From Octopus sinensis (Eukaryota), in contig NC_043020.1 of assembly GCF_006345805.1 (NCBI RefSeq), positions 27,776,001-27,840,000 of the forward strand: a stretch of DNA of 64,000 bases. The letters run 5' to 3'. The notes beneath the pieces were generated by a model. That model was not told where the DNA came from. It saw nothing but the letters and a program-made list of their open reading frames with translations, and did not search any database. The translations under genes were made by a program, and so were the position numbers. Position 1 is the first letter of the stretch. The number at the start of each line of letters is the position of its first letter. This document shows, one piece after another, positions 118-54,542 of this stretch.

Positions 118-1581
118 CTAAGCCGTTTTATTTCTTTTCGCGTCGTTTGATTGACCGGACGAGTCAGATCCCCCTATAATCGCCCATTCTTGGATTTCTC
201 CTCTTGCCAATATTGCAAATATTATTGCACCAAATACACAAATACCACTGTACAAGGATAACACGATCTGCCATTCTTCTTGTGTACCGTTTGGGGTTAA
301 AGCTTTTGTAGTTAAGGAACTAATACTGCCGGAGAGTGCAGATATTGCATTAGCAATTGAATACACAACACCAGCAAAGCTTGGCGCAATGTCGATGTTA
401 TTAGGGATAACTCCCCCACTGGAAAATGACAGAGTGATACCACTGAGCAAAAACAAGACACTTATCAGAATGGTTTGGTCACATCTGAGAAATCCTATGG
501 TAATCAGTATACATGCTGATGTAACCATCGAAAAAGTTTGGAATAAAACGCGAACGGAACGGTTTGACAGATATTTCTTTGAACGCAAAATGTCTGCGAA
601 TTTTCCACATATCGGTAGAGCAAACATTTGTCCCATGGAAGGAGCAGACGACATTAAACCGTTCGATGTTGTTTTAATGTTTAAGGCTTCTTTCATATAA
701 AGAGGTAGCAACGTCTGAAAGGACATATCTATCCAATTATAAGCAAACAAACCAATATTAATGGCCCAAACTGCAGGGGAAGAAAGCAGCCGTTTCCAAG
801 GTACCTTTTGAACAGCATTTTTACATTTTATAGCGTCGTTTAAGTAGAAACGTTCTTCTTCACTAATAGCTGGATGAACGTCTGGATTATCGTAAACAAC
901 ATACATCCACACAAACCCAAACACCAACGATAATCCACCAAATATATAAAATATCGAACCCCATCCATTATCAAATCCATATACACAAAGGTAACTTGAA
1001 GTAGGAAAGGCTACAATATTACCGAGAATTTGACCAGCAAATGTAAGCCCAATTAATACACCGTTCTCTTCTGGAGGGGCCCAACGTCCGATTAGGAAAA
1101 AAACTGCTGGAAATATAGGTCCAGATGCCATACCTGTTAATATTCTTAGAGCAAGCATAAAGTAACCATTAATTCGAGTTAAACTTGGGTGAAGAATTGC
1201 TAGAATGGATGTTGAAAGAATTGAACCTGCAGCGGTTATTTTCCCACCATATTTATTTGCCAATGCTCCACCGAAAATATTAGTCACCATATATCCATAG
1301 AAGTATCCAGCCAGTATGTTTGATTGTAACGTGTCGCTCCATTCGAACTCTCCTTCTATGTTTGGATTAAAGGAATCATTAGCGAAACCAGAACAATATT
1401 GGTTGTTCGTAGTAACGTTAACTTCCTCATTTGTACGATTGGCTCTTTTCAACATACAAACAAAGGACATGCTCAGATCGACTCTTAATGTTTGCATGAT
1501 AAGTAATGCCACAGTACAAGCGTAACATATCCTCCATCGACATGAATAATAACGCTTAATGCCACTGGTAAATTTCGACAT
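118..1581 (-). CDS. SLC17A5-like: SLC17/sialin-like MFS anion-transporter family protein, paralog A (487 aa, single coding exon)
   Basis: Uninterrupted ORF with SLC17 motifs LRVDLS (TM1), EFEW, GYFYGY, RWAPPEE, VYDNPDVHPAISEEER, VPWK, DIAPSFAG, TQEEW and GEIQEW. A candidate acceptor (tttgcag) lies 2 nt before the ATG. Confidence 0.95.
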   Translation of the reverse strand: MSKFTSGIKRYYSCRWRICYACTVALLIMQTLRVDLSMSFVCMLKRANRTNEEVNVTTNNQYCSGFANDSFNPNIEGEFEWSDTLQSNILAGYFYGYMVTNIFGGALANKYGGKITAAGSILSTSILAILHPSLTRINGYFMLALRILTGMASGPIFPAVFFLIGRWAPPEENGVLIGLTFAGQILGNIVAFPTSSYLCVYGFDNGWGSIFYIFGGLSLVFGFVWMYVVYDNPDVHPAISEEERFYLNDAIKCKNAVQKVPWKRLLSSPAVWAINIGLFAYNWIDMSFQTLLPLYMKEALNIKTTSNGLMSSAPSMGQMFALPICGKFADILRSKKYLSNRSVRVLFQTFSMVTSACILITIGFLRCDQTILISVLFLLSGITLSFSSGGVIPNNIDIAPSFAGVVYSIANAISALSGSISSLTTKALTPNGTQEEWQIVLSLYSGICVFGAIIFAILARGEIQEWAIIGGSDSSGQSNDAKRNKTA

Positions 1582-3839
1582 TTCTGCAAATTCAAATTCT
1601 CTTTCTTCTCCTTATGCTGTGCCCGCTGTTTAAGATTATATTAATTCATAAGTAATACAATCTTTTTTATATTTAAACGAAAACTTTAAGCCAGCGACTG
1701 CAGTTTATTGGCTTACTTGTATACTTTTGTCAAGTGACGTTTGTTAGTTTCTAATTCTTTTGCAATTTCAAAATAGAAAATATTTGTTTGATCTCTAACC
1801 GAATTACGTCTTCTTCCAAAATCTTTGATTACAATATCTTAGTACAATTATATTTCACAGTACATTCGGGTAATGTAATATCGATAAACATGGAAGTCAT
1901 TTGCCAATCACTAAAAAGGAAATATCGGCTCACAGTTTGGTGTCTGGTGACTTCGTTTCACCATTACTTAGGAATAGAAAACATCGCGTCAAGGAAAGAA
2001 TACAGGCAAATAATAAAGTAACAATGAAAATGAGGAAATGAGACGGTAAATTATTGAGAACACAGATGCAGGAATTGTTTTGTAATCCGTAATGTTTGCA
2101 ACAAGACTTAAAACTCTCACTTCTAATTCTTTCTTCGTCTACAGTAACAGACGGGTTATTGAAAAGATGTGAGTTCAGTTCAACTTCGTTCGTTGATATG
2201 TTGGATAATTATTTTTTAATAAGAGCTCAGTGTAGCTGTGATAAAGGGAGATTGTAAATTCCTTGAAGGCCATGTTTTCAATACTGTTGCTGTTCGTTGT
2301 CCACTTATAGTTTATATTAGTGCTGTATAACTTTGTGATGGTGTATATATTGTAGTTTCTATTCGAGGCTCAGTCATTCCATGTAATCCATTCCTTGCAT
2401 TTAAAATGTTGCAGAAACTGAAGATCCATTGTTTAGGAAATATTAAGGCTGTGAGAAATGTCGGTGGATAGAAACGATGAAGTTGAGAAATAAAATTCTT
2501 TGTGTATTTCTTTATGTTTCTTTCCTTTATTGGAGAATTTTCTTCGTTCAGTTATGAAGTAATCGATTGTGCATCTCCTCAGATGTGAAATCCTGTACCA
2601 TGTAAAAGAAATCAACATTAGTGAGATATTCCATTTAGATGTAGTTTTATCTTACATTCTTATCGCTTTATGATCTCTTAAGTGTAAAGTGAGAGATGTA
2701 TGTACAATAACGAGAGTATACATAGAGAGGTATAATTACTGCAAGTGGCTGAAATATGAGAGCGTCACGTTACACGTCAAAAAGTATTTAGTAAAGAGTA
2801 AAATGAGAAGTTATGGTTTGTGAACAATAACTTCGGGAGTGTTAAATCAGAAAATAAAACGACAGGTCAAATTGTTATACATTTATTGTTTCGGCATTGC
2901 GAGACCAAAAAACCTGGTGTAGAACTCCAGAACGAAGAGTTAGACGAGCATTGAGAGGTAATAGGAAAAATAGACGACCAAAGGTATAAATGAGTATCTT
3001 ATGAACACCATTAGCTCACAGCTGTTTCTGCTATAAGAGGGAGTGGATTTGTAGTTGAGTGTCTAAATAACAAGTTAAAGCTTCATCGGAGCGTTGAATA
3101 TGCTGTGCAATTTCTTTGGGAAAATAATTACATTTCTGCTTATATATGGAACGGTGTTATCAATGAGAAAGTCAATACAGAAGACAGATATCTTATCGCC
3201 TGAGAAACGCTCGTGTTTGCGGTAGATGGGTTCTACTTTATGGAAAATACATTCCTTCTCACCCGAGAGATAAGCTCTTACTCACGGTAGATGGGTCTTA
3301 TTGCGTAGGAAAGAGAACCGTCCTGGTCCTACAGGGGCTCTTGTTCACATCAGAAAGACTCCTCTTTACAAGAGATAAATTTCTTCACCCTGGAAGATGT
3401 ATCCCTTATAGGACGGTACTACTGATGCAGTATAACCATAATTAAGGTCTAGTTAAACTGCAAAGGAGAGGTACGGTGTTTGTATAACGTTGCAGCCTGT
3501 CTCTGTTTTAATAGAATTCTTTTTGTAATATCACATTGTGTTGAATAACAGTGGTTTACAGAGAAACTGAGGTAAACATAAAAACAAAGAAAATGACTCT
3601 CCCCAGACACAATAGTTTAAAAATAGTTGTTGTAGCCTAATTTGGGGGTGCTGATTTCAGATACAAAACCAGTTTTCACTCATCATCTCTAGATTTTAAG
3701 ATATACATTTTTATGATTTTGCGACAATTCACGTAACCATGAATTGATCAATTTTTTATTTTATTTTCCAGATTTTTGCGATACGTAAGATACACATTTC
3801 TACAATGTGTAGAAATATTCTCAAAAGACGTCCTCCGGT

Positions 3840-4330
3840 GAGAATGGACTGGAACACTGCATATAGATATTAGCGGACTCAGTAAGTGGGCAGTTCGTAT
3901 CGGAATGCAGTTTGGTGCTAGTTCCACTGTTCGTGTGTTGATAGTCGAAGCTGGAGTTCAAAGTTCGAGTTAGCATGATGGATTGTTGGTTCTTAACAGA
4001 TTGTTGTTACGTTGCGTGTGGCTACTGCAGTTTGTTTCGATCATATAGCTATTACACTGCTTCAGTGTAATCGTTTATCCATAAAGATATAACACAGACA
4101 TACGTACATATTCAATCCAGGAACGGGAAATATCAACCAAGTACATGATGCACAAAAGGGACAGAGATGCAGGAAAAGCAGTAAAATGTGACAACCGACG
4201 CAGACTTCGTGGAGATAATACCGAAGATATCACCCACATCATAAGCAGTTATCCGAAAATATAATCATGACATTATCTACCGATGAGACATGATGGTGTA
4301 GCTGGGATACTATTTAATGAAATCCAGCGG
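3840..4330 (+). mobile_element. Degenerate fragment of an RLE-type (R4/NeSL/HERO-like) non-LTR retrotransposon
   Basis: Manual translation near 4115-4330 gives QEREISTKYMMHKRDRDAG..CDNR.RL.GDNTEDITHIISS.PK..HYLPMRHDGVA, resembling the CCHC/RHD region of RLE elements. It contains stops and is recognised from memory only. Confidence 0.4.
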
Positions 4331-4533
4331 ACGGATAACCTCGAGAAATGGATCTTGAAGCACAATAAAGCTATATATTATACATGTAAATAATATTTTC
4401 TGAAACGCATTTTTGATAGAAAATTACGAAGAATGCACGAGATGCATACCTAAAACCATTATTTCACCTCTCCCTGCTTTATAATTCTCATGTTGTGAAC
4501 ACACACGCATACACACATACACACTTACACACA

Positions 4534-4569
<36 letters not shown>

Positions 4570-5284
4570 CTTTGTATATATCTACATATATATATATTAG
4601 ATTTATCTTATATTAAACTTTTTAATACTTTTTGATAGTTATATATATTTAATAAATAATAATAATAATAATAATAATAATAAGAATAATAATAAATAAA
4701 TAAATATTTATAAATATAAATTAATAATTTAATTTTAAATTTTAAATTTAAATAATTTAAATTTTTAAATTTTATATTTTATATATTTTGTATATTATAT
4801 TAATTATTTTTATTTTATGTTTTGGTTAAGGTTTTTCAGTGTTTATTGCCTAATTTATCTCTAATTTAATTTATATATATATATATATATTATTATATAT
4901 ATATATATATATATAATGCAGGGGGCTTAATAGCAATCTAAACACCTAAAGACAAATGTATTGACGTCAATAAAGTGAGAAAGTGTACAACGTTGTACCA
5001 GTATGCTAGATATGGCTCAGGGGTCGTTCTGACCTTATTTCTAGCATAGCGATGCTGGCACAACTTTGGACACTGTAACTTTAGTGACCTCAATCTATCT
5101 ATCTATCTATATATAAAATTAAAGAGTGCTTGCATGTACTCACACACACACACAAACACAGATACATACATACAATATTATATATACATAATATATATAT
5201 ATATATATAATATTATATATATATATAATATATATATATAATATCTATATATATATGGGTGTTGTGTGTGTGTGTGGTGTGTGT

Positions 5285-5575
5285 GTATGTATGGCCTAGT
5301 GGATAAGGTGTTGTACTCACGATGGTGAGATCGTGGTTTCAATTCCTAGGCAGGGTGGCGTGTTGTGTTCTTGAGCAAAACACTTCAACTCTCGCTCTGC
5401 GACCTCTTCGACCCCTGATGCGTGGCACCCCGGGCACCTGCTCAGACAATGTTGATTTGATGGAGAGGAGTGAGGTAATGTGCGGTACATACGTTTGATC
5501 ATTGGAAATAAATCATTTGTGTGAGTCGTTCGACGAAAAAGCTGAACATCTATTCGTTGTCATCGACGGGAGAGC
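5285..5575 (+). mobile_element. tRNA-derived CORE-type SINE
   Basis: A-box-like tggcctagtgg and B-box-like gtttcaattcc, followed by the CORE-like gtgttgtgttcttgagcaaaacacttca. Ends at (TA)n. Confidence 0.7.
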
Positions 5576-5576
5576 C

Positions 5577-5970
<394 letters not shown>

Positions 5971-6256
5971 ATACTGTAATATTAAATGAGAGATAAAGCC
6001 ACTATTAGCAAATGAAACATAATAAACTTAACCAAAACATAACATAATATAATTATAAAATATACAAATATATAAATATTAAATTTTTAAATTTTATTAT
6101 GTAAATTTAAAATGATTAATTTATATTTATAAATTTTTATATTTTTTAAATATTTTAAAAATTTTATTAATAAATTTTTTAATTTTTAATTTCTAAACTT
6201 TTTTGTATTTAAATATATATAACTATCAAAAAGTATGAAAAAGTTAATGTATTGTG

Positions 6257-6287
<31 letters not shown>

Positions 6288-7236
6288 GATATATATTATA
6301 TTATATATATATAAAGGTTTGTATGATTATGTATAGAGGGATATATATTATTCAAAGGAATTCCAACTCTGTTTTTTATGGTTTATTTATATTCTTTATA
6401 ATATTAATGTAGAATATAGAATAAATAGTATAAATAATACATATATAGTAAAATGAAATGAAGTATTGATTGTCTTATTGAATAGATGAAATATTGAATA
6501 TAAAATATTAAGGAACTAGTATACTTTCTTGCATTTAAGCAGTCTTGAAGGTCCCAGGTTGTGACAGGAATGTTTCAACTGTCTATATATATATATATGT
6601 ATATATATATGCGTGTGTGTGTGTGTTTGTCTGTGTGTCTAGCTGTGTCTGTTTCTCATGACTTACCGGCTGTTTTGGTCATCTTCCTTAAGTTTATCGA
6701 TATGCAATGGTAGGTGTCATCCGAACTTCAAAAGAACGCAATCGGTCTTTATACTTCAAGAACAGCTGCCATCTTTACTTGAATCCGTTCAGAGTAGTCA
6801 ACTCTCCAACTGACTCAATAAAGAAATACTTTCAGCTGTAACTGGCAGACGTCATTAACATATCTACAATTTATTGAGGTTATCAAATTAAAGGACAGTG
6901 GCGTGACAGTTGTTTGTCTGTTATTTTGAATTCATTATGCATAACATATTTATATATTATCTCTGACTTTGGTTACATTTATTCATTTGGCCTCAATGTC
7001 CCTTTCCTATAATCATATTCCTTCAGGTGTATATTCATTGCCGAGCACATCTGTACGCCTTAACACGCCCTAACTTAAACAGATGGACACACAGACATGT
7101 GAACACAAGCGCACACATATGTATATATGTATATAAGCAAATAAAAGAATAAAATAATACACACACACACACACACATACACATACACATACACACGTAT
7201 ATATACATAAATAGACATGCATACATGTACTCTATA

Positions 7237-7645
7237 GGCGCATGTGTAGTTGTGTAATAAGTAGCTTGCCTACCAACCACATGGTTCTAGGTTCAGTCCT
7301 ACTGCGTGGCACCTTGGGTGACTTCTAGTATAGCCACACACCGACCAGTGGATTTGGTAGGCGGAAACTGAAAGAACCCGTCGTATATATATATATGTGT
7401 GTGTGTGTATGTGTGTGTGTATGTGTGTGTGTGTGTGTGTCTGTGTATTTGTGTGTCTGTGTTTGTCCCCCAACATCATTTGACAACCGATGCTGGTGTG
7501 TTTACGTCCCCGTAAATTATCGTTTCAGCAAAAGATAAAATAAGTACTAGGCTTACAAATAGTAGGTCCTGGAGTCGATTTGCTCGACTTAAGGCGGTGC
7601 TCCAGCATGGTCGCAGTCAAATGACTGAAACAAATACAAGAATAA
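7237..7645 (+). mobile_element. SINE family 'A' (tRNA-like head, internal TA/TG microsatellite, conserved tail)
   Basis: Head ggcgca..gtagcttgc.taccaaccacatggttc..ggttcagtcc; tail ...gcggtgctccagcatgg.cgcagtcaaatgactgaaaca. The same element recurs at least eight times in the window. Confidence 0.85.
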
Positions 7646-8984
7646 AAGAATGCACATTAATGCCTCACTTAATGAGGGTCAACTTTACGAAGAACCGTTT
7701 TACGGGACCTCGACTTTACAAGTGTTATTTTATAGTAAATATAAAACGGTTAAGCTGCTATTTTGTGAACGTAGTGCAAAAGTTTCTACTACCATAACAA
7801 ATGCTTCTGAATGTTACCGAGAAATTTATTGAGAGCGAAAAAAAAGCCTGTAAGCAAACAATACTAAACTTGTTTTTTAAAAAGGAATCAACTAGTCCGT
7901 CTACGAGTGTTTGTGTGCGAGTCTAGTGCGAGTGAAAGTGATTCAGAAAACGACAATAATAATAATATTTTTTATTATAAATGATCTTGACATTATTTTT
8001 ACTTTACATAAAATATTCTTTACATTCTGCTGTTGTTTTACTGACGGTTATTTTGGAGTAAAAATTTAATTACGATTTCAAACATTGCTACTACGTGAAA
8101 TATATGGTCTGCTTTACGAGATTTCGCTTTACCAGCGGTCTCCGGGATCAAATTAACACGTATATCGGGGCATTACGGTATATACGTAAAAACACACCCA
8201 ACACTACGCACACATATACACATTACACTACACACACATACACACTCACACATACACACTACACGCATACATACACACTCACACATTCACACAGATATAA
8301 GACCAATTCTCAGACAGACGAAATCAGAGTTTGGAGCGATTAGCGAAGTCACGAGTCTCTAGAAAGATCGTGAACATTGACGAAAGTTCTTTGACGAATT
8401 TAATTCATCTACACAAGGTTGCATCTAGCATCATTAATTTTGTATGATCTAGCATGACTAAGTAATTTATACTTTGACAAGGAAAATACTTTGACAAGGA
8501 AAATAACTGATTTTAAGAGATTAACTCTGTTTAAAACATATTCTGAAGTCCTCAGTAGCTGACCAATCACGTCTCTTATAAGAAACCAGTACAAATGATA
8601 TTTTGTTCTGGAATTTAAAAAGAGACTAAATGTTTTTATATAATTGGGGGTGAATTCTACGAAATAATTCCTTCATATACACATTACACTACACACACAT
8701 ACACACTCTTCACGATCTCTTGAAGGCTTATAAATTCTGATGACGTAAACAAAACATGATAATACGTTGCTCTCTTTTCCTTTGTACTATTTAACTCAGT
8801 TTCCTATTGTGAAATCCTTATTAGCTTGGAAATGGATTTAACAGCTTTATTCCATTCCAATTGGTGTCATTACAAATCCAGCAAATTCTACGTCACAATA
8901 TTTAGTTACCTAGCTATATATGTATATATATATCCTATATTCTACCAACACCACTATCAACTCTTACCTCTCTTTTGCACGCAT

Positions 8985-9380
8985 ATTTTTTTTCTCTCCT
9001 TCTTTCTGTGTTTTTTCTCTGTGTATCTTTCTGTTGAAGAGCGTAGGCTCGAAACGTTAAAGACTTGTTTTATTTATATTTCCTGAGCGCCATACTAATA
9101 CGATTGTTTGTTTGTATTCCACCTGCCTTCGTCTTTTGTTTATTTCCGTAAACCTGCCTTCGTCTTTTGTCTATTTTCATAAAGCTTCCCGTTATAGATA
9201 TTTATATATATATATAACGGGAAAGTTTACGAAAATAAACAAAAGACGAAGGTAGGTGGAGTACAAACAAACAAATGTATTAGTATGGCGCTCGGGAATA
9301 GAAATAGAACAAGTCTTTTACGTTTCGAGCCTACGCTCTTCGACAGAAAGATACACAGAAAAGAAACAAGGAGAGAAAAT
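8985..9380. mobile_element. Inverted pair of a PLE-terminus-like element carrying a hammerhead-like motif, centred on a short (TA)n
   Basis: gaagagcgtaggctcgaaacg at about 9036 and its reverse complement at about 9321. The arms are reverse-complementary over about 170 bp. Confidence 0.7.
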
Positions 9381-9908
9381 AAGAAAATGGAGGACTGCGA
9401 ACTTTATGTATGTACATGCATATATACTTTTTGCATGATGTAAAAGGATAAAATCTCTTTATATATGTATATGTATTAATGGATGTTTTTGCGCATGTAT
9501 GTATATGCATGTGCATGTATTTGGTACCAGTGTGTATATATATATGTATGCAGATTTAGACTAAAGTTTCCATTTTCGCTGTATGATATATCAATATAAT
9601 GACATTGTATATTGTGACATTGTATATTGTGACATTGTATATTGTGACATTGTATATTGTATTTTATTTTATTGAATTAATGTACTGACATCTCCCATAT
9701 GCATCTGTCTATATATTATGTTATACTATATTATATATTATATATTATATATTATATATTATATATTGTATATGTAATATGCAATATAATATATTATATT
9801 TATTATATGTTATGTTGTGTTACATTGAATTATATTATACTATATTTTATGTGGTATTTTCCATCTACAATGTATTGTGAATAGCAGGATGCACATATTC
9901 CTACATTG

Positions 9909-10016
<108 letters not shown>

Positions 10017-10174
10017 GTTTTTAGTAATGTAATGCAATGAACTTTGGACTTTGTATATGTACCTTTGATGTGGATATATATGTATATTCCAGTATATAGA
10101 TTTGATCAACTGTAACCTTATGTGTAATGTATATTATTTGTATATACTTATATAATGTATTGTAGGTGTATACA

Positions 10175-10223
<49 letters not shown>

Positions 10224-10820
10224 TATATATATATGTATATATGTAATATATGCATATTCTGTATATGTGTACTTGTTAATATTTATATTTGCACTTTATA
10301 TCTTCATTCATATCTTCATAATTGTACTTTATAATCTCAGACGAGGCCTTGAGATAAATATATATCAAGGCCTCATTTTTAACTGACATATTACCTCAAT
10401 ACATCTGACTATATGGACATAATGAGATACCCTTATCTACAGGCTGAACAGCTGTAAGATCCATTTTATATGTATTATTTTTATGGTATTATCTTACTTA
10501 TTGATGTATATTCTGTCTTATTCTGTGGATTTGAATGTTCCTATTTAATTTAATTTATTAGTTAATAAATTATATGAATTGGTATTATCTGGGTGATGAT
10601 TGAAAGGAATCTATTCTCGATTTTCTTATTTTGATATATATAATATATATATATAATATATATATAATATATATATATAAATATATATATACACACAGCA
10701 CACATATATATATATACTACGTGCATACATATGATGCATAAGTATTTACACACACACACACACATATATATATATAACTGTGTATGTGTATATATACAAG
10801 AGGGAAGAGAGAGAGAGAAA

Positions 10821-10851
<31 letters not shown>

Positions 10852-10933
10852 AGAGAGGAAAGAGAAAGAAAGAGAAGCAGACATCGCATATGTATGTGTA
10901 ACAGAGAAGGGTTTTGTTTGTTCTACAAGAGAA

Positions 10934-11033
10934 NNNNNNNNNNNNNNNNNNNNNNNNNNNNNNNNNNNNNNNNNNNNNNNNNNNNNNNNNNNNNNNNNNN
11001 NNNNNNNNNNNNNNNNNNNNNNNNNNNNNNNNN
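10934..11033. other. Assembly gap (100 N)
   Basis: Run of exactly 100 N, typical of a scaffolding join of unknown size. Confidence 1.
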
Positions 11034-11825
11034 TTATTGTTCAAATATCTTGGTACAATCTCTGCATTCATTCTACCATCTATCACATGTAAAATGCCAG
11101 TTGCCGTACCATTTGCAGAGAAACACCCCCCCCACTATGATGTTGCCACCTTCCCAACCGTCTCCAAACTTTATGGTAGTGAATTGTGTTTTTTCGGTAA
11201 ATAGGCGGTCCATCTTTCCCAAACATGGCTACGCGAATTTCATCCGACAATTCAATTTTCAACTCGTCTGTCCATAGAACATTTTCCCAGAATGTATCAG
11301 ATTTATCTTTATGTTCATAAACAAATTTTAAACAGGCATCTCTATGCCTTTTAGTCAACAGCGGAGTTTTTCTAGGAGAGCGTGACTTCAGTTCATTCCT
11401 ATGAAGTTCATTGTTGATTGTTCGTAGTGTAACACTAGTCTCTGAAGCTAACAAATCTTCTAGCAACTCCTTTCTGGTGATCATTGCGTTCTTTTTCGAT
11501 TCTTCGATTCATTTTTATTAAAGATCTAGGGGAAATCTTGCGTGGTGCACCGGATCTTATTTTGTTTTCAACAGTTCCCGATTTTTTATATCTTTGAATA
11601 AATGGAGATGTAGTAGAAAATGGAATCTGATATTTTCCTGTAACTTTTACCTGCTTTCCACAGTTCAATAATTAAATTTTTCACTTAATTTGTAAGTTCT
11701 TTACTTTTCGCCATTATTACGATAATTCAGTGCTGAATGAAGAAGCTAGCGTTTTATTTTAACAGTATTTTGTGGCATAGAAAATCATGAATTTATTCCG
11801 TACGAATATTTATTTGCCCCCATTG
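11034..11825 (-). mobile_element. Tc1/mariner transposon, 5' part, frameshifted and cut by the gap
   Basis: ORFs 11435-11668 and 11083-11484 give HTH and first-D regions (RSGAPRKI, SRSPRKTPLLTKRH, WENVLWTDE). Then GGNII..CFSANG..IDGRMNAE runs into the Ns. Probable TIR end caatgggggcaaata with a TA target at 11826-11827. Confidence 0.85.
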
Positions 11826-12780: not shown

Positions 12781-14250
12781 ATGATGAAAATCAGCGGATT
12801 TATTAAGCATTATTCGTCGTATCATTGGATATTATGCTATGTTACTTTCATGACCGTTCTCCTGTTACACACATTAAGAGTTGACCTCGGTATCGCCTTT
12901 GCTTGTATGCTGAAAACATCCAACAGTTCACTTCAAGAACTTAATCATACCGGAATAAAGGAAGAATGTCCAGGGTCGGAGAATCATTTACCGAATAAAA
13001 CATTTGAAGGCGAATTCGAATGGAGCAACTCTTTACAGTCCCAGATGTTGGCTGGATACTTTTATGGATATACAGTGACTAATATATTTGGTGGTATGTT
13101 AGCCGACAAGTATGGAAGTAAAAATGTTCTGGGTTTTTCCATTATCTCGGCATCTATTTTGGCTCTGCTCCACCCAAGTTTGTCTAGAATAAGTGGGTAC
13201 TTTACCCTTGCCTTAAGGATATTAACGGGTTTGGTTTTAGGCCCTATGGCCCCATCAGTCCAGTCGTTGTGGGGACGTTGGGCACCACCCGAAGAGAGAA
13301 GCTCACTAGTTGCGTTTTCGTTTTCTGGCCAAACATTAGGGACCATTATATGCATGTCGATCTCAGGTTTCCTTTGTGAATATGGATTTGACAACGGATG
13401 GGGTTCTATATTTTACTTATTCGGTGGAACAACGCTGCTGTTTAGTTGTGTGTGGTTTTGTGTTGTTTATGATAATCCAGATGACCACCCCAACATCAAC
13501 GAAGAAGAACGAGTATATTTAAACAAAAACAGAAAAGATAAGAGTGAAGTAAAAAATGTACCTTGGAGGAAAATACTATCTTCTTCCGCCATTTGGGCCA
13601 TTACCGTTGCCCATATGATCACCAGCTGGACAAATACGGTCTTCCAGATGTTGTTACCATTATATATGAAAGATGTATTAAACATTGATCCTTCGGCGAA
13701 TGGTTTAATGTCTTCAACTCCGTCGTTAGGACAATTCATATTTTTACCATTATCAGGAAAACTTGCAGATGTTCTACGTTCAAAGAATTATCTGTCAACT
13801 CGTTCAGTCCGAGTAATATTCCAGTCTATCTCTTTTATTGGTTCAGCATCTCTACTTGTAGCCATCGGATTTCTGAAATGTGATCAGACTATTTTAATAG
13901 GAATTCTTTTATTCCTCTCTGGCGTGACGACTGCATTTTATTCTGGCGGTTTCTTGGTAAACCATATCGACGTTGCTCCCAGATATGCTGGAGTTTTATA
14001 CGGATTTACCAATACATTTGCATCAATATGTAGTATTTTATGCCCCTTGGCGGTTAAAGCTCTTACACCAAACGGTACGCAGAAGGAATGGCGAACAGTG
14101 TTGATCATGAGTGGTGCACTCTCGTTGTTTGCGGCAATAATTTATGCGTTATTTGCGAAAGGAAGTGAACAAGAGTGGGCTTACACTAAAGACAATTCTT
14201 CGCAAATTTCTGAAAAACTGGAAAAACCTTTATTAAAAGAAAGTTGCTAA
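12781..14250 (+). CDS. SLC17A5-like: SLC17/sialin-like transporter, paralog B (489 aa, most divergent copy)
   Basis: Intact ORF with LRVDLG, EFEW, GYFYGY, WGRWAPPEERS, VPWRKIL, NHIDVAPRYAG and GSEQEW. Confidence 0.95.
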   Translation: MMKISGFIKHYSSYHWILCYVTFMTVLLLHTLRVDLGIAFACMLKTSNSSLQELNHTGIKEECPGSENHLPNKTFEGEFEWSNSLQSQMLAGYFYGYTVTNIFGGMLADKYGSKNVLGFSIISASILALLHPSLSRISGYFTLALRILTGLVLGPMAPSVQSLWGRWAPPEERSSLVAFSFSGQTLGTIICMSISGFLCEYGFDNGWGSIFYLFGGTTLLFSCVWFCVVYDNPDDHPNINEEERVYLNKNRKDKSEVKNVPWRKILSSSAIWAITVAHMITSWTNTVFQMLLPLYMKDVLNIDPSANGLMSSTPSLGQFIFLPLSGKLADVLRSKNYLSTRSVRVIFQSISFIGSASLLVAIGFLKCDQTILIGILLFLSGVTTAFYSGGFLVNHIDVAPRYAGVLYGFTNTFASICSILCPLAVKALTPNGTQKEWRTVLIMSGALSLFAAIIYALFAKGSEQEWAYTKDNSSQISEKLEKPLLKESC

Positions 14251-15060: not shown

Positions 15061-15816
15061 TTCCCCCTCAAACATATTGCTCTAATAGTCACTAAGTTTA
15101 GCTGTATAACACTCCTGCAAAGACCAATTTAAATGTTAAACGCATTCTTGACAATTAACCGAAATGCATTGTCGCTACCAGCAATTTAATAGGTTTTCTT
15201 AACATAGGCTATACACGACACGGCTGAATCAAAAGAGGAATGATCTGATATGTTTTTAATCGACCCTGGAATGCTGAAAGACGAAGTCAACTTGAATAGG
15301 AATGGAACTATCTCAGAAAAAGTAGTGGATTAAATTTCGATGTGCTCAAAGTATTTTATCAGACGTTCTTATGCATTATTCTCTATAGTTGAATGATTAG
15401 GAAGATCATATCGCAACAATTAGGTTCCATTTTGGACAGAGGTCCTTTTTTTTATAGCTTTAAGTTGACCGAATTCGTAGGAATATAACTTGGTAGTCGT
15501 AAACCATAGATGCTTGTCAGGTAGATGGTACTTGTAATCCATAACTTGTCACACTGATTCTGTTTAGAGGTACACGTGTCTATGAAATACTCAGCCGCCA
15601 TACCTGCTCGTTAATTCACTGGCAAATAAACTAGCAGAGAAATATGAAAGACTCTTCCCCCAGCGCTCGCACCTTACCTCGTATGGCCTAGCGGCCCTCA
15701 CTGTTTATTTTCACTGTCCTTTTTTTTGTAACCAAATTTGACCCTCCGCAAATCCCAAATTTTATTTTGGTTCGCGAGAGCAACTGTTTTCTCGAAGGCA
15801 CATATTGTCGTGAACT

Positions 15817-16230
15817 GCTCAGGAGCGGCTGTGCGGTAAGTAGCTTGTTTACCAACCACATGGTTCCGGGTTCAGTCCCACTGCGTGGCACCTTGGGCAA
15901 GTGTCTTCTACTATGGCCTCGGGCCGACCAAAGCCTTGTGAGTGGATTTGGTAGGCGGAAACTGAAAGAAGCCCGTCGTATATATGTATATATATATGTG
16001 TGTGTGTGTGCGTGTATGTTTGTGTTTGTCCCCCTAGCATTGCTTGACAACCGATGCTGGTGTGTTTATGTCACTGTCACTTAGCGGTTCGGCAAAAGAG
16101 ACCGATAGAATAAGTACTGGGCTTACAAAGAATAAGTCCCGGGGTCGAGTTGCTCGATTAAAGGCGGTGCTCCAGCATGGCCGCAGTCAAATGACTGAAA
16201 CAAGTAAAAGAGTAAAAGAGTAAAGAGTAA
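15817..16230 (+). mobile_element. SINE family A, full length, (agtaaaag)n tail
   Basis: Same head and tail as the 7237 copy. Confidence 0.9.
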
Positions 16231-16349
16231 ATGTGTAGAAAAACAGCCGACAACTGATGAAGGGTCGTGTTTTTATGTTACTTGTCTTGTTTTCCATTTG
16301 TTTCTCTCGCTGTTCGCAAAAAATGTTTGTCTTCGTATTTCATGTTGTT

Positions 16350-16539
16350 TACGTTTTGTGACGATCAAAAGTGATCGTATCACAGAAGAATTTTAAAAAT
16401 GTAAAAAGCAAGATTAGGTTTATCCGTGGAAAGAAAAACCTACGGAGAAGACCACGCTAAACTCAGGTAGGGAGGGAATAAATACATGAGAGCAAAGTGC
16501 TCTCTCTCTCTCTCTCTCTCTCTCCTCCTCTCTCTCCTC

Positions 16540-16599
<60 letters not shown>

Positions 16600-17914
16600 T
16601 TACAGGATCATGCTCAAAGTGGTTTCGTCACTCACACGCACCATATTTACTACATTCATCCACCTTTTTTTGAAACTTTCACGAGAAAAAACCTGCCTCT
16701 CTATTCTCACCTTCCTTTTCAAGTGGCACTTGAAAAGGTTGATGAGCGATTGGCCAGAGAGGTTTGTCTCTAATCCCTTCACTAATCCACTATAGAACGC
16801 CTTTGTTGTAATGAAGTCGCACAAGTTTGATCCCGGACGGCAGAGTTGCTTGAGATCAATGCGACACTCGCGGTGCCATTCGCCTAGCATCGGTCTCTGT
16901 TTGATCCACAACTGCAGTTCGGCCAAGGAGACGAGCTGCGGGAAAGCGCGCCGCACAAAAGGCGGCCACACTTGTTCACCGTCGTCTATGAAGCGCCAGA
17001 GATGTCGGAGTCTCAGCGCATGCCTGTGCATCATCGGCCACGGCATGCCCAGCCCTCCATTTAGCGGGTGTTGACAGCAAATGGATTGCCTAACCATTGG
17101 GACGCTTCCCTTCCAGAAGAAGCGGAAGTGTATGCGTTCCAGTTTGGTGATGGTAGGGTCGGGACAAGGCACGACGGTCAGACGGTACTCGATGACGGAT
17201 GCGACGTACGCGTTCGCCACCTCCGCCCGACCTTTTAGCAATAGCTTCTTCTCGGTCCATTACTGGGTGAGATTGGCCACCCTAGTCATTATTTCGCCCC
17301 AGTTCTTCTCCATTTGGAACCAGAGTCCGAGCAATTTAGCCGGTCCGTCGGTCCAGCGTCCCACTATGGAGATGCTGTTAGACGGTATGAGCTCCCGTTG
17401 CCGCTTCGTATTCTTTTAGAGTCTCGCCGATCAGGTCGATGTGCTTGTGACTCGGCATTATGACGGTGATGTCGTCCGCGTATGCAGACACGCTCGTCCT
17501 GCATCCCAATTCTCGCGGGATGCCCCTCAGAGTCGCCAGCTTCCGCAGTAGTGGCTCGAGAGTCAATACGTATAGAAGCGACGAGAGGAACCGAAAGTGC
17601 AGTGTCGAAAGGTCTCGATGTCCATTTACGCGAATTACCGAAGGGATGCCTCTGTACAAAGCAGCTAACCAGCCACGGAAAACGGGACCGAAACCAGCCG
17701 CTATGAGGACAGCCTCTAAGTATCGATGGTCTACTCTATCGAAAGCTTTCGATTGATCCAAATTGATCAGGGCCCCACCCATGCCAGGTTTCTTAACTAC
17801 CCTGTCTATGATGTAGCGCATCAGATGGAGGTTGGCAAGGATGCTCCGGCCCGCCACTGCGTACGTTTGCGCCTTGTCGACTAGTTTCTCGATGACAAGC
17901 GCCAACCTCTTTGC
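16350..17914 (-). mobile_element. L1/Tx1-clade LINE, 5'-truncated ORF2 (RT through C-terminus) plus part of the 3' UTR
   Basis: LDQSKAFDRVDH, TLEPLLRKL, SAYADD, GGLGMP and a C-terminal HLKRKVRIERQV..TTLSMIL stop at 16600. 16350-16470 matches the 3' UTR copy at 18773-19080. The 5' break abuts (TATC)n. Confidence 0.85.
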
Positions 17915-17986
<72 letters not shown>

Positions 17987-17987
17987 C

Positions 17988-18048
<61 letters not shown>

Positions 18049-18081
18049 TAGAATGATAGATAGATAGATAGATAGATAGAC

Positions 18082-18116
<35 letters not shown>

Positions 18117-18275
18117 CATACAGACATACAGACAGACAGACAGACAGACAGATAGATAGATATATAGATAGATAGATAGACATACAGACATACAGACATA
18201 TAGATATACAGACAGATAGACAGACAGACAGATAGACAGACAGACAGACAGACAGAAAGATAGATAGACAGAAAG

Positions 18276-18316
<41 letters not shown>

Positions 18317-18337
18317 TAGATAGATAGATAGATAGAT

Positions 18338-18397
<60 letters not shown>

Positions 18398-18455
18398 GCA
18401 GAAAGAGAGGTAGATAGATAGATAGGCAGAAAGAGAGGTAGACAGATAAATAGAT

Positions 18456-18494
<39 letters not shown>

Positions 18495-18497
18495 CAC

Positions 18498-18543
<46 letters not shown>

Positions 18544-18573
18544 GCAGAAAGAGAGGTAGACAGATAAATAGAT

Positions 18574-37504: not shown

Positions 37505-37890
37505 AAGTAGCTTGCTTACCAACCACATGGTTCCGGGTTCAGTCCCACTGCCTGGCACCTTGGGCAAGTGTCTTCTACTATAGCCTCGAGCCGACCAAAG
37601 CCTTGTGAGTGGATTTCGTGAGTGGAGACAGAAACTGAAAGAAGCCCGTCGTATATATGTATATATATGTGTGTGTGTGGGGGGGTGTTTGTGTGTCTGT
37701 GTTTGTCCCCTAACATCGCTTCACAACCGATACTGGTGTGTTTACGTCCCCGTAAGCTAGCGGTTTGGCAAAAAGAGACCGATAGAATAAGTACTAGGCT
37801 TACAAAGAATAAGTCCTGGGGTCAATTTGCTCGACTAAAGGCGGTGCTCCAGCATGGCCGCAGTCAAGTGACTGAAACAAGTAAAACAGT
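37505..37890 (+). mobile_element. SINE family A, 5'-truncated
   Basis: Head, microsatellite and tail as in other copies. Confidence 0.85.
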
Positions 37891-38527
37891 AAAATGAGAG
37901 TATACAAAAGATAGCATTTCATCATTTCATCATTCCACAGACTTGGCATTTCAAGGATTACTGAACGCCAACAATTAAATAGCGTGCAATTATGTCAGTA
38001 GAGGATTCACATGAGATGAAGGCGGTCATGGGAGAGTGAAAGGAACTAAATATAAAGGAGAGGAATTTGTTCAGATTCCGTTGCAGGCTGACACAAGAGC
38101 GACCACCTGTCTTATTGCATATGAGGAGGAGTAAGGGTAGACATGAGGAAGATGACAAAGAAACGGTGAGTAAAGAAAAGACGAACAAACCCACACGCAC
38201 ACTGAAACACACACGATATATATATATATATATATATATATAGTCGCCATGATAGATCGTTAGCCACTACACACATTTTTTTCTCTCCTTGTTTTTTTTT
38301 CTGTGTCCCTTTCTGTAGAAGAGCGTAGGCTCGAAACGTAAAAGACTTTTTCTATTCGTGAGCGTTATACTAATACATCTGTTTGTTTTGTAGCTGTTGT
38401 CATTATTCTTTTTCCGTATCAAAGTCAGCCCTGCAACGTTAGTCCTATGGTCGACTTCGTCCCACCCAGGACAAATAATCTTTAGTAATATCCAGTACCA
38501 TGTTATCGAATATTACATTGAGGTTAA

Positions 38528-43181: not shown

Positions 43182-44644
43182 ATGTCGAAGTACACCAGTT
43201 GTATGGAGCGTTATTATTCATGTCGATGGAGACTATGTTATGCTTCTACTGTCGTTTTTCTTCTCTCGCAAACACTAAGAGTTGATCTAAGCATGGGATT
43301 TGTTTGTATGTTGAAGAGACCCAATCGTACAACTGAGGAACTTAACATTACTTCAACTAACCAACATTGTTCTGGTTCGAATAGTTATTCAGTTATTCGA
43401 AATTATGAAGGAGAATTCGAATGGAGCGACACCTTACAAGCAACCATGTTAGCTGGGTACTTCTATGGCTCTATAGCAACTACTTATTTGGGCGGTTTAT
43501 TGGCGGACAAATATGGCGGTAAACGAGTTCTTGGTGGTTCACTTCTCACTTCATCCATTCTGACCCTTCTTTGCCCAAGTTTATCACGAATTAGTGTGTA
43601 CTATATGATTGTTCTAAGAATATTAATAGGTATGGCATCAGGAGTGGTGGCCCCAGCGATACACTCCGCATTTGCACGTTGGCTCCCTCCAGAAGAAATT
43701 AGTTTATCCATTGGGTTTACATTCGCCGGACAAATTGTAGGTACCGTTGTAGGTCTTTCAACATCAGGTTATCTTTGTGTTTATGGCTTCGATAATGGAT
43801 GGGGTTCTATATTTTATGTATTTGGTGGAATATCGTTGCTGTTTAGTTGTGTGTGGTTTTATGTTGTTTATGATAATCCAGACGTCCATCCCACTATCAG
43901 CAAAGGAGAACGTGCTTACTTGAAGAGAACTGTAATAAGTAAGAGACTAGTTAAAAAAATACCTTGGAAACGACTGCTTTTTTCCCCTGCTGTTTGGGCC
44001 ATCATCTTCGGTTTGTTCGCTTATGCCTGGACTTTCATAACTTTCGAGACATTGCTCCTCTATATATGAAAGAAGCCTTAAAGGTTGATTCAGCCTCCAA
44101 CGGTTTCATGTCGTCTGCTCCTTCGGTTGGACAAATTATTTCTATGCCATTATGTGGAAAGCTTGCAGATTTTATACGTTCAAAGAAATACCTGTCAACT
44201 CGTTCTGTTCGGGTTTTATTTCAAACCATTTCTCTGATTGCTTCAGCGTGTCTGATGATTGTCATCGGATTCCTCAGATGTGACCAAAGCGTTCTGATAA
44301 CTATCCTCTTATTTCTCAGTGGTATAACTTTATCATTTGCCAGTGGCGGTGTTGGTGTCAATAACAGAGACATTGCTCCAAGTTATGTTGGTATTATATA
44401 TGGAATTGCAAACACTTTCGCAATAAGTTCGGGCGGCATGTGTTCCTTAACTACAAAAGCTTTAACCCCAAACGGTACGCAAGAAGAATGGCAGATTGTA
44501 TTAGTCTTGTGTGCCGGTATATGTGTGTCTGGGGCAATATTGTATATAATATTGGCAAGAGGAGAAATCCAAGAATGGGCAAGGTCTGAAGGATCTAGCT
44601 CAATGGATCATCCAAAGGAGATAAATAACAGTACAACAATATAA
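43182..44644 (+). pseudogene. SLC17A5-like: SLC17/sialin-like paralog D, single 1-bp deletion at about 44056 (pseudogene or sequencing error)
   Basis: ORFs 43182-44069 and 43964-44644 join into a full-length paralog if one base is restored in ttg ct_ cct cta tat atg (LLPLYM in all paralogs). No other lesion seen. Confidence 0.6.
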
Positions 44645-45631: not shown

Positions 45632-45636
45632 TATAT

Positions 45637-45670
<34 letters not shown>

Positions 45671-45729
45671 CATAAACACAAGGCAGGAACGAGTACAGAG
45701 ATGTCTTCACACAATTTAAATAAACAAAT

Positions 45730-45901
45730 AGGCGCAAGAGTGGCTGTGTGGTAAGTAGCTTGCTTACCAACCACATGGTTCCAGGTTCAGTCCCAGCGCG
45801 TGGCATCTTGGGCAAGTGTCTTCTGCTATAGCCCCGGGCCGACCAATGCCTTGTGAGTGGATTTGGTAGACGGAAACTGAAAGAAGCTCGTCGTATATAT
45901 G

Positions 45902-45940
<39 letters not shown>

Positions 45941-46390
45941 TTGTGTGTCTGTGTTTGTCCCCCTAGCATTGCTTGACAACCGATGCTGGTGTGTTTACGT
46001 CCCCATCACTTAGCGGTTCGGCAAAAGAGACCGCCTTTTGTCGAGCAACTCGACCCCGGGACTTATTCTTTTGTAAGCCCAGTACTTATTCTAGCGGTCT
46101 CTTTTGCCGAACCGCTAAGTAACGGGGACATAAACACACCAGCATCGGTTGTCAAGCAATGCTAGGGGGACAAACACAGACACACAAACATATACACACA
46201 CACTTATATATATATATACATACATACGACAGGCTTCTTTCAGTTTCCGTCTACCAAATCCACTCACAAGGCATTGGTCGGCCCGAGGCTATAGTAGAAG
46301 ACACTTGCCCAAGGTGCCACGCAGTGGGACTGAACCCGGAACCATGTGGTTGGCAGACAAGCTACTTACCACACAGCCACTCCTGCGCCT
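45730..46390. mobile_element. Tail-to-tail inverted pair of SINE-A copies
   Basis: Plus copy 45730-46033 and minus copy 46034-46390. Confidence 0.92.
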
Positions 46391-46952
46391 ATGTATGTGC
46401 ATATTTCATTAATTTGCATGTACGGCTCATAATTCGTTTGCCTCTACTGATGGTATTTTAATAATACCATTCCTCTTATATTTATTCATAAATAACTTCA
46501 CACATTTCGTTTGCTTAAACAGTGTTTTGTCACTTCAAACGAACTTTTGCACGCACGGTAGGAGAATATTTTAATATTAGTTAGCTGAAAGACTTTTGCT
46601 AAAGAGAAACAGGCACCTATTTGGCCCTAATTTCGAAACCAGTACCAAGTTGACCAGCATTACCTGTGCTGACCTATCAAAGGTAAGACGTTATTAATGT
46701 CTGTATTAGATTTATGACTATTCTATCTCTATTATATATATATATATATATGTGTGGAAACCCTTACGCTAGAAAGAGATCCGCTATGGTCTCAACCACT
46801 AAGAATTGTTCTCCAGAAAATTTAGCACACCAGAAACTTAAGCGATGTTATAAAATTAATATCCAATTTTTCCCCCTCATCTTGATTTTATATATATATA
46901 TATATATATATAGAAGACTATTGTAGTTCGCTTGGAGCATTGTGCATTGTTT

Positions 46953-47073: not shown

Positions 47074-47099
47074 TATATATATATATATATATATACATA

Positions 47100-47151
<52 letters not shown>

Positions 47152-47639: not shown

Positions 47640-48510
<871 letters not shown>

Positions 48511-52677: not shown

Positions 52678-52775
<98 letters not shown>

Positions 52776-52970
52776 TATAATATATATATATATACATATA
52801 AATATATACGATGGGCTTCTTTCAGTTTCCGTCTACCAAATCCACTCACAAGGCCTTGGTCGGCCCGAGGCTATATAGAAGACACTTGCTCAAGGTGCCA
52901 CGCAGTGGGACTGAACCCGGAACCATGTGGCTTGTAAGCAAGTACTTACCACACAGCCACTCTTACGCCT
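52258..52970 (-). mobile_element. SINE-A split by a hammerhead-like element and (TA)n
   Basis: Tail 52258-52480, inserted element about 52500-52680, (TA)n to 52800, head 52805-52970. Confidence 0.8.
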
Positions 52971-53078
52971 ATAGTCTTTGTTTACACTTTTACAATTCAC
53001 ATCACTCACAGTTTTATATATTTTCAAACAATAAACTTCCAGCAAAATATTGTGAGAATTAGTAGAAAGGCCATAATA

Positions 53079-54542
53079 ATGTCGAAATTTACTCGTTGTA
53101 TAAAGCGTTATTCTTCATGTCGATGGAGATTATGTTACGCCTGTACTGTTGCTTTTCTTCTGCTACAAACATTGAGAGTTGATCTAAGCATGGCTTTTGT
53201 TTGTATGTTGAAAACACCCAATCGTACAACTGAGGAAGTTAAGTTTACTACAGGGAACCAGCAGTGTTCCGGTTTAGATAACCGTTCTCTAAACCAAAAT
53301 TATGAAGGGGAGTTAGAATGGGGCAGTACCCTACAATCAAACATATTGGCTGGGTACTTCTACGGATATATAGCAACTAATATTTTGGGTGGAATTTTGG
53401 CAGACAAATATGGTTGGAAAAGAGTTCTAGGAGGTTCGCTTTTATCAGCATCCATCCTGGCCATTCTTCATCCAAGTTTGTCTCGAATTAGTGGTTACTT
53501 TACTCTTATTCTAAGAATATTAACAGGCACAGTATCAGGACCGTTCTGCCCTGCGATTTACTCTTTATTTGGGCGTTGGATCCCTCCAGATGAGATAAGT
53601 TTATTTGTTGCGATTACATATGCTGGTCAAATTCTTGGGAGTGTTGTAGGTCTTTCAATATCTGGTTTTCTTTGTGATTATGGCTTCGATAATGGATGGG
53701 GTTCTATATTCTATGTATTTGGTGGATCATCGTTAGTATTTAGCACTGTATGGTTTTATGTGGCTTATGATAATCCAGATTCCCATCCCACTATCAGTGA
53801 AGAAGAACGTTCTCACTTAAAGAGAACTGTAATAAGTGAAAAGGCAATTCAAAAAGTACCATGGAAACGGCTGTTGCTTTCACCTGCTCTCTGGGCAATC
53901 AACTTCGGTTTCTTCGCTTATGCCTGGACGGATTTATCTTTCCAGATGTTGCTGCCCCTATATATGAAGGAAACTTTAAAAGTTAAAACTACATCCAACG
54001 GCTTAATGTCGTCTGCCCCTGCCATTGGACAAATCATTGCCCTTCCGTTGTGTGGAAAATTTGCAGATTTTATACGTTCAAAGAAATACATGTCAACTCA
54101 TTCAGTTCGAATTGTATTCCAAACCTTTTCTATGGTTACTTCGGCTTGTCTGCTGATAAGCGTAGGCTTTCTGACATGCGACCTAACCGTTCTAATAACT
54201 ATCCTCTTGTTTCTCAGTGGTATAACTCTATCGTTTTCCAGTGGTGGTGTCATCGTCAACAATATTGACATCGCTCCAAGTTACGCTGGTGTTATAAATG
54301 GAATTTCTAACACCTTTTGCTCAATGGCTGGTAGTATTAGTACCTTATCTACAAAAGCCTTGACCCCAAACGGTACCCAAGAAGAATGGCAGATCGTATT
54401 TGTTTTATGTGCTTCTGTATGTCTAGGTGGTGCAATACTATTTGCAGTCTTGGTAAGAACAGAAATCCAAGACTGGGAAAGGTCTGAAGGATCCAGAGCA
54501 ACTGTTACTTCCAGAGAAATAAATAAAATTGCAAAAGTTTAA
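53079..54542 (+). CDS. SLC17A5-like: SLC17/sialin-like transporter, paralog E (487 aa from ATG 53079)
   Basis: MSKFTRCIKRYSSC matches paralogs A and D. The ORF-track start at 53052 is a GTG. Intact, with all family motifs. Confidence 0.95.
   Translation: MSKFTRCIKRYSSCRWRLCYACTVAFLLLQTLRVDLSMAFVCMLKTPNRTTEEVKFTTGNQQCSGLDNRSLNQNYEGELEWGSTLQSNILAGYFYGYIATNILGGILADKYGWKRVLGGSLLSASILAILHPSLSRISGYFTLILRILTGTVSGPFCPAIYSLFGRWIPPDEISLFVAITYAGQILGSVVGLSISGFLCDYGFDNGWGSIFYVFGGSSLVFSTVWFYVAYDNPDSHPTISEEERSHLKRTVISEKAIQKVPWKRLLLSPALWAINFGFFAYAWTDLSFQMLLPLYMKETLKVKTTSNGLMSSAPAIGQIIALPLCGKFADFIRSKKYMSTHSVRIVFQTFSMVTSACLLISVGFLTCDLTVLITILLFLSGITLSFSSGGVIVNNIDIAPSYAGVINGISNTFCSMAGSISTLSTKALTPNGTQEEWQIVFVLCASVCLGGAILFAVLVRTEIQDWERSEGSRATVTSREINKIAKV

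Follow-up and report, generated by a model that had tools for sequence, protein, structure and literature searches.

The closest described relatives of the genes considered here are carriers of the SLC17 family. Human sialin (SLC17A5; PDB 8dwi and 8u3d), a lysosomal H+/sialic-acid symporter, is their best match in both sequence and structure, followed in structure by VGLUT1-3 (SLC17A6-8). A glutamate (Glu) located seven residues after the arginine (Arg) of transmembrane helix 4 (TM4), hereafter R+7, has been described as conserved across SLC17 (PMC11649914, PMC9858498), and E133 of DgoT, the E. coli D-galactonate/H+ symporter, and E191 of VGLUT2 are equivalent to sialin E175 (Hu et al. 2023, PMC9858498). 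Within the family, members of the SLC17A1-5 clade (clade IV) tend to expand in individual lineages, as they have in fly and amphioxus (PMC2824716), and Albertin et al. 2015 described an expansion of octopus "sialin" genes, according to two reviews whose relevant passages list only the expansion (PMC6110919, PMC6062618). We found no residue-level or mechanistic description of this octopus expansion in the literature searched. Here, we analyse one stretch of the same gene family, i.e. a 64,000-nucleotide segment of Octopus sinensis (assembly GCA_006345805.1, chromosome CM016882.1, ~27.776-27.840 Mb; hereafter the window), whose genes are annotated as "sialin-like / slc-17.2-like". Judging from their sequences, we consider it reasonably probable that the encoded proteins are organic-anion carriers combining a shared Arg anchor with relocated counter-charges and diversified specificity, and that their intronless array derives from a retrocopy.

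The window contains five single-exon SLC17 reading frames. Four of these are intact intronless coding sequences: A (118-1581, minus strand, 487 aa), B (12781-14250, plus strand, 489 aa), C (23493-24947, plus strand, 484 aa), and E (53079-54542, plus strand, 487 aa; the copy used for structural modelling). The fifth, D (43182-44644, plus strand), is a frameshifted pseudogene, so the "five paralogs" of the initial annotation are indeed five homologous copies, but amount to four genes plus one pseudogene. Pairwise identity among the copies is 53-71%, and all four intact ones match Pfam MFS_1 (PF07690; E=1e-44 to 1e-60). The genes show the features of the octopod intronless SLC17 expansion, namely single-exon coding sequences of ~485-490 aa, a tandem arrangement on one chromosome, and the residues Q54, D59, H/Y153, T171, and S175 (sialin numbering); the window is thus part of a tandem array of this octopod-specific subfamily, in which B groups with the older subclade. 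Taken alone, the locus is an ordinary member of a known and annotated expansion.

Copy E aligns to human sialin (8dwi) without gaps through TM1, TM4, and TM7 (phmmer against PDB chains, E=4e-85), and VGLUT2 aligns as RILQGLVEG (R184..E191), which confirms the register for both SLC17A5 and VGLUT2. The TM4 motif reads RILTGMASG in A (1120-1146, minus), RILTGLVLG in B (13216-13242, plus), RILTGAVSG in C (23928-23954, plus), RILIGMASG in D (43617-43643, plus), and RILTGTVSG in E (53514-53540, plus; sialin R168..G176). Glu is missing from R+3 and from R+7 in every copy, and R+7 is Ser or Leu in all five. TM1 carries (Q/H)xxRVD throughout, e.g. QTLRVD in E (53166-53183, plus; sialin Y54..N59), with the counterparts at 1477-1494 (minus) in A and at 12868-12885, 23580-23597, and 43269-43286 (plus) in B, C, and D. 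In TM7, the triplet equivalent to sialin W303-T304-F305 is W-T-D in E (53925-53933, plus) and C (24339-24347), W-I-D in A (727-735, minus), and W-T-N in B (13627-13635), while D reads W-T-F-I-T-F-E (triplet at 44028-44036). The TM1, TM4, and TM7 motifs listed by the initial annotation are therefore real and homologous in position among the five copies, but that list had overlooked a further change in TM3, where the LHPSL motif places His131 at the site of sialin T153 (E codon 53469-53471, plus; A 1189-1191, minus; B 13171-13173; C 23883-23885; D 43572-43574, which encodes Cys).

In the numbering of the octopus proteins, A and C share Q30, R33, D35, H131, R146, T149, S153, and D285 (within W283-I-D285 in A and W-T-D285 in C), and B has H30, R33, D35, H131, R146, T149, L153, and W-T-N285. 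D departs by H131 to Cys and T149 to Ile, keeps F285, and adds E289. The two Arg typical of SLC17 transporters, R33 in TM1 (sialin R57, DgoT R47) and R146 in TM4 (sialin R168, DgoT R126), are present in all five copies. Relative to sialin, E retains R57 and R168 and changes Y54 to Q, N59 to D, E171 to T, E175 to S, F305 to D, and Y306 to L. The window proteins as a group also have T153 replaced by His, D or N at 305, L, I, M, or T at 306, and variable residues at H298, N302, and S411; common to both are Y119, N430, W303, and a glycosylated TM1-TM2 loop with a conserved Cys. The TM1, TM3, and TM4 motifs are kept in orthologues from two further Octopus species and the pattern recurs in ~50 octopod paralogues, Argonauta among them, and is therefore not due to chance.

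The absence of both TM4 Glu had been presented as a hallmark of these five genes; it is real, but not particular to them. A search of 1.84 billion cluster representatives with a profile built from A, B, C, and E retrieved 2,041 proteins at E<=1e-30; among the 150 nearest 50%-identity cluster representatives (156 domains), 114 domains (73%) are non-acidic at both R+3 and R+7, while the remainder includes 17 with both Glu, 19 with the R+7 Glu alone, and 5 with the R+3 Glu alone. R57 and R168 are near-universal in the same domains. The nearest named relatives come from bivalves, gastropods, a chiton, nemerteans, annelids, and a brachiopod, with L, I, M, or V at position 171 and T, S, Q, or A at 175, and both Glu are absent in all the nearest mollusc, annelid, nemertean, and brachiopod "sialin-like" proteins. 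The R+7 Glu thus defines the members of SLC17 that have been studied rather than the family. The initial annotation had itself named the sharing of these substitutions by most invertebrate sialin-like proteins as a ground for rejecting its idea, and for the Glu loss this is what the census shows.

By contrast, a Babylonia protein carries the full human sialin signature and retrieves orthologues from cnidarians to vertebrates. In this canonical sialin clade, molluscs such as Babylonia included, 96 domains have both Glu, out of 118 that extend over TM4, and the signature sites (Y54-R57-N59-T153-R168-E171-E175-H298-x-N302-F305-Y306) mostly read YRNTREEH(N/Q/Y)NFY (124 domains). The window genes instead read Q/H-R-D-H-R-T-S/L followed by variable residues, and these comparisons place them outside the true-sialin clade. 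In neighbour-joining analyses, the intronless octopod clade is recovered in 100/100 bootstrap replicates, its sister grouping with the octopod multi-exon "sialin" group that includes the gene P0045 in 98/100, and a Glu-less lophotrochozoan clade containing both octopod groups in 87/100; canonical sialin was not recovered as one clean bipartition (18/100), and its limits are soft. The double loss is thus ancestral to a large lophotrochozoan clade and predates molluscs. This clade, known through automatic "sialin-like / slc-17.2-like" annotations, is the home of the window genes (bootstrap 87-98) and shares with them the two Arg, the lack of TM4 Glu, and in part H298/N302; the window genes differ in being intronless and tandem and in carrying Y54Q, F305D, Y306L/I, and a variable C-domain pocket. 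No cephalopod protein is found among the best 120 matches to mollusc canonical sialin, where gastropods, bivalves, and a chiton are present, so cephalopods may have lost true sialin, or their copies may lie beyond those 120 matches.

What remains specific to octopods is modest: N59D with T153H, Y54Q and F305D in the intronless genes, and a hypervariable pocket half beside an invariant half with the two Arg. The N59D and T153H pair is octopod-wide, being found in the intronless genes and in multi-exon P0045, whose coding exons, 11 or more, are spread across 48 kb of a different chromosome and which shares D59, H153, T171, and S175. His at 153, which arose together with N59D, is essentially restricted to octopods (Tyr or Gln in some paralogues, Cys in D), and non-cephalopod relatives have Asn at 59, hydrophobic residues at 171, and hydrophobic residues or Thr at 153. 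Compared with these relatives, the octopods have therefore re-polarised the tunnel region of the protein (D59, H153, T171, and S175). The marks of the intronless expansion are Y54Q, F305D, and Y306L/I, and Asp at 305 is rare outside octopods (1 of ~150 representatives, and a few Mytilus proteins). Across 26 octopod paralogues, the N-domain half is nearly fixed, with R168 in 26/26, R57, Q54, and T171 in 25/26 each, S175 in 24/26, and D59 in 22/26, and the C-domain pocket positions 298, 302, 305, 306, and 411 rank among the more variable alignment columns (86th-96th percentile of entropy). A sister group of the octopod multi-exon "sialin" (P0046, P0099, and P0242, from Logan/ENA contigs) has Gly59, Tyr153, and Ser at both 171 and 175, and may be a decapodiform or other cephalopod version.

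The AlphaFold (AF2) model of E (predicted local distance difference test, pLDDT, 85.5; predicted template modelling score, pTM, 0.86) matches sialin with a Foldseek TM-score of 0.92-0.94, with VGLUT2 and DgoT next, and D35, H131, R146/T149/S153, and D285 lie inside helices, those holding the two Asp being confidently predicted. The window proteins accordingly belong to SLC17 within the major facilitator superfamily (MFS), with the 12-TM fold of sialin. In sialin, N59, T153, and R168 line a lumen-accessible tunnel ending at E171, which T153 contacts, and F305 and Y306 line the central pocket together with R57 (PMC9858498). The new Asp residues are therefore not expected to face lipid, a possibility raised by the initial annotation, since by homology the N59 site lines the tunnel and the F305 site the central pocket (PMC9858498).

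We suggest that the proteins act as organic-anion (carboxylate) carriers in which anion binding would remain with the half of the cavity formed by the invariant R33 (TM1) and R146 (TM4). Sialin's TM4 counter-charges (E171 with R168, E175 with R57) would have moved to other helices, i.e. Asp35 (TM1) and His131 (TM3) would occupy water-tunnel positions of the N-domain beside R146, and Asp285 (TM7), present in most paralogues, would lie opposite R33 in the central pocket. Proton relay through TM4 Glu, the canonical route, could not operate, so any pH sensing or H+ coupling would have to use Asp35/His131 and/or Asp285, and Asp35/His131 may be a substitute pH-sensing site. The C-domain pocket (298, 302, 305, 306, and 411), which varies by paralogue, would then provide a repertoire with diversified substrate specificity. 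The complete or near-complete invariance of R33 and R146 points to anionic and not to cationic substrates. Sialic acid is unlikely to be one of these substrates: three of the five residues that H-bond N-acetylneuraminic acid (Neu5Ac) in the docked sialin pose are lost or variable, as Y54 and Y306 are gone and N302 varies. The initial annotation was on firm ground in doubting that these are H+/sialic-acid symporters, and the canonical type is very unlikely given the missing TM4 Glu, the lost Neu5Ac contacts, and the position outside the sialin clade. As to its origin, the intronless subfamily probably goes back to a retrocopied P0045-like gene.

Several observations weigh against this reading. 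Cavity facing and Asp-Arg geometry are taken by homology from published descriptions of sialin, at ~34-38% identity. N59D without His153 occurs sporadically elsewhere (chiton, Capitella, Haliotis, and a nemertean), and inside octopods the association of D59 with H153 is weak and not phylogenetically independent. Asp at 305 is found in 14/26 octopod paralogues, and B has Asn285 together with Leu at the S175 position, so pairing of R33 with Asp285 cannot be general. As for the retrocopy origin, the absence of introns is the single argument for it: the flanks of the genes contain no poly(A) tract and no target-site duplication and are unalignable. Nor do the flanks reveal a shared duplication unit, as only dispersed repeats align. 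The Logan contigs examined for signs of transcription end in a (CCAT)n microsatellite, not poly(A).

The main rival explanation is that these carriers are uncoupled or potential-driven organic-anion uniporters or exchangers, as reported for SLC17A1-4 (NPT) and VNUT, with Asp and His serving purely as structural salt-bridge partners; we regard this as possible, if on the unlikely side. The Glu-less relatives speak for it, as they carry a hydrophobic residue at 171 and often at 153, with Asn59, and hence have no titratable group in the tunnel, yet they are widely conserved and presumably functional. Human NPT1 has a TM4 of R-A-V-Q-G-A-A-Q-G, with Gln at both sites. The NPT1-4 organic-anion exporters are not known to carry Glu at either TM4 site and belong to the same clade IV, but to a vertebrate-specific branch, and were not among the 150 nearest representatives. 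SLC17 uniporters have also been described in the literature (PMC11649914, PMC13351989). Against the uncoupled mode, the re-polarised tunnel (D59, H153, T171, and S175) is kept in most octopod paralogues and exceeds what charge burial needs, and buried Asp/Arg pairs are the usual H+-coupling device of MFS carriers (e.g. DgoT D46/R47; PMC11649914).

DgoT has an SLC17-type fold (Foldseek TM-score 0.78-0.87, with 19-20% identity to the window proteins), the TM1 and TM4 Arg, and a TM1 Asp near the Arg, D46 being a protonation site (PMC11649914). However, it keeps E133 in TM4, and the Asp in its TM1 directly precedes the Arg (R-1, sialin L56), while that of the octopus proteins comes two residues after it (R+2, sialin N59). 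The VGLUTs share with the window proteins TM4 RIL-x-G, the two Arg, and the lack of Glu at R+3 (Gln in VGLUTs), but keep E191 at R+7, H128, and R322; in the octopus proteins, E191 corresponds to Ser and R322 to Tyr.

The initial annotation had read the acidic gains differently, as neutralising the anion site and so allowing neutral, zwitterionic, or cationic ligands, or a channel or sensor role. The pocket is indeed strongly remodelled, and the rarity of an Asp at 305 outside octopods also fits that view. However, both Arg are invariant or nearly so, and they are already paired with Glu in sialin, so the net buried charge is the same in A, C, and E: with two Arg and two Asp in these copies, the change is a relocation of counter-charge rather than a change in net charge. 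The fold and all gating helices are intact, and there is no added channel- or receptor-like part, no extra domain, and only short tails. We therefore consider neutralisation of the anion site improbable. The additional Glu of D, also put forward as a transporter feature, lies in a pseudogene and carries no functional weight.

Copy D has a 1-bp deletion at ~44055-44057, just ahead of PLYMKE. Its O. bimaculoides orthologue (6558-8018 of locus L006) stays in frame at that site and is broken independently, by an N-terminal deletion of most of TM1 and by stops at KRLV*KIPW and IQE*AAS. The ratio of nonsynonymous to synonymous substitution rates (dN/dS) between orthologues is 0.438 for D, compared with 0.233, 0.254, 0.235, and 0.238 for A, B, C, and E, and is 0.18-0.38 among paralogues. 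D is a pseudogene because of its frameshift, its independently broken orthologue, and its doubled dN/dS; the number of conserved sites at which it alone departs, 5, is close to that of A and E and does not set it apart. The rates indicate purifying selection on A, B, C, and E, each of which has a full-length reading frame and a 1:1 orthologue in O. bimaculoides, with A and E having O. vulgaris orthologues as well. Orthologues of A, C, and E in their respective clusters are at least 90% identical and that of B 89% (93% for A in O. bimaculoides). Rapid species-specific turnover of paralogues was considered and rejected, as the apparent lack of orthologues is an artefact of clustering at 90%.

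These data also bear on whether the array is decaying, non-functional DNA, with substitutions that mean nothing for function. The loss of D in both O. sinensis and O. bimaculoides, and its dN/dS of 0.44, would fit such decay, but the intact reading frames and 1:1 orthologues of the other four copies, their dN/dS of 0.23-0.25, and the retention of key residues across ~50 paralogues including Argonauta make it very improbable.

The N-terminus may be informative about location. Morin et al. reportedly identified in 2004 an N-terminal cytosolic dileucine as the lysosomal-targeting signal of human sialin. The window proteins have 12 residues ahead of the TM1-aligned region, compared with 36 in sialin, so the dileucine-bearing stretch of sialin is absent, and those 12 residues contain no LL; this short N-terminus suggests a non-lysosomal location. 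Separately, the C-terminus of B (14200-14247) ends ...EKLEKPLLKESC, which resembles a dileucine motif, has no counterpart in the other tails (A, C, D, and E), and may direct B to a different place in the cell.

The assembly is interrupted between A and B by a run of N (10934-11033, no strand), which is intergenic, touches no SLC17 reading frame, and is separated from A by 9.3 kb and from the ATG of B, downstream of it, by 1.7 kb. On the right, a frameshifted remnant of a Tc1/Tc3-type transposase (11034-11508, minus; PF01498, E=3.8e-13) runs into the gap and does not resume on the left flank, which is a microsatellite. Orthologues of A and B are 72.7 kb apart in O. bimaculoides, compared with 11.2 kb in the window, and those of A and E are 327 kb apart in O. 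vulgaris, compared with 51.5 kb. Since these distances are far larger in the two other Octopus assemblies, the gap probably hides much DNA, standing for tens to hundreds of kb, and it possibly holds further paralogues. Positions 20-10644 of the window and the O. vulgaris A locus are collinear, with an identity of 83-99% that is 97-99% over most of the stretch; the final kilobase of that locus has no match with the right flank of the gap, and continuity across the gap is doubtful and unsupported. Orientation is alike in the three Octopus species, with A directed away from B-E. Protein accessions of O. vulgaris suggest ~15 gene models between A and E.

Beyond the outer side of A, a sixth intronless SLC17 paralogue lies tail-to-tail with it ~5.6 kb past the left edge of the window (17113-18570 of locus L002), and O. 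bimaculoides also has further copies on that side (15083-16586 and from 21360 onward in L007). O. vulgaris has a tandem duplication of the A region, with two 390-aa models ~8.8 kb apart (10001-11173 and 18836-20008 of L009), both copies being 97-99% identical to window positions 20-5625; this duplication is either recent or collapsed in the O. sinensis assembly. The window itself is AT-rich, with many microsatellites, repeats resembling short interspersed elements (SINEs), and reverse-transcriptase fragments. A tRNA-derived SINE-like element is scattered through it (15817-16230, 37505-37900, 45666-46392, 52785-52972, and 22043-23426), forming at the last of these a tandem run of ~185-bp units just upstream of C, and its translation yields recurrent "...RPRKDERQSRPRRNLNSERSGRRNT..." pseudo-open reading frames. 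Other intergenic retroelement debris is present at 27181-27708 (plus), 29075-29515 (plus), 31232-31780 (minus), and 62285-63535 (minus), and consists of RVT_1 fragments, a weak zf-RVT match, and a reading frame with a Torus domain.

The findings bear on how SLC17 transport is understood, as structural papers build the coupling mechanism on TM4 Glu residues taken to be conserved SLC17-wide, and our census shows that true sialin, VGLUT, and DgoT follow this rule, whereas most of the nearest invertebrate sialin-like proteins do not. Octopods are a convenient test case, as they combine many close paralogues with one conserved half that anchors the anion, one variable half for selectivity, and a candidate substitute for the proton site. 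Their paralogues could show how SLC17 works without the canonical relay, and could give a function to a gene family singled out as expanded in the octopus genome. In a bolder and rather unlikely scenario, the TM4-Glu relay was lost ancestrally in lophotrochozoans and octopods rebuilt a titratable Asp (TM1) and His (TM3) site beside the TM4 Arg, within the same water tunnel; the gene was then retrocopied and amplified into dozens of paralogues that retain this site and the anchoring Arg pair, differ in the opposite pocket half, and form a repertoire of pH-sensitive organic-anion transporters peculiar to the lineage. If true, this rebuilt Asp/His site would be a natural experiment in the re-evolution of ion coupling in an MFS carrier.

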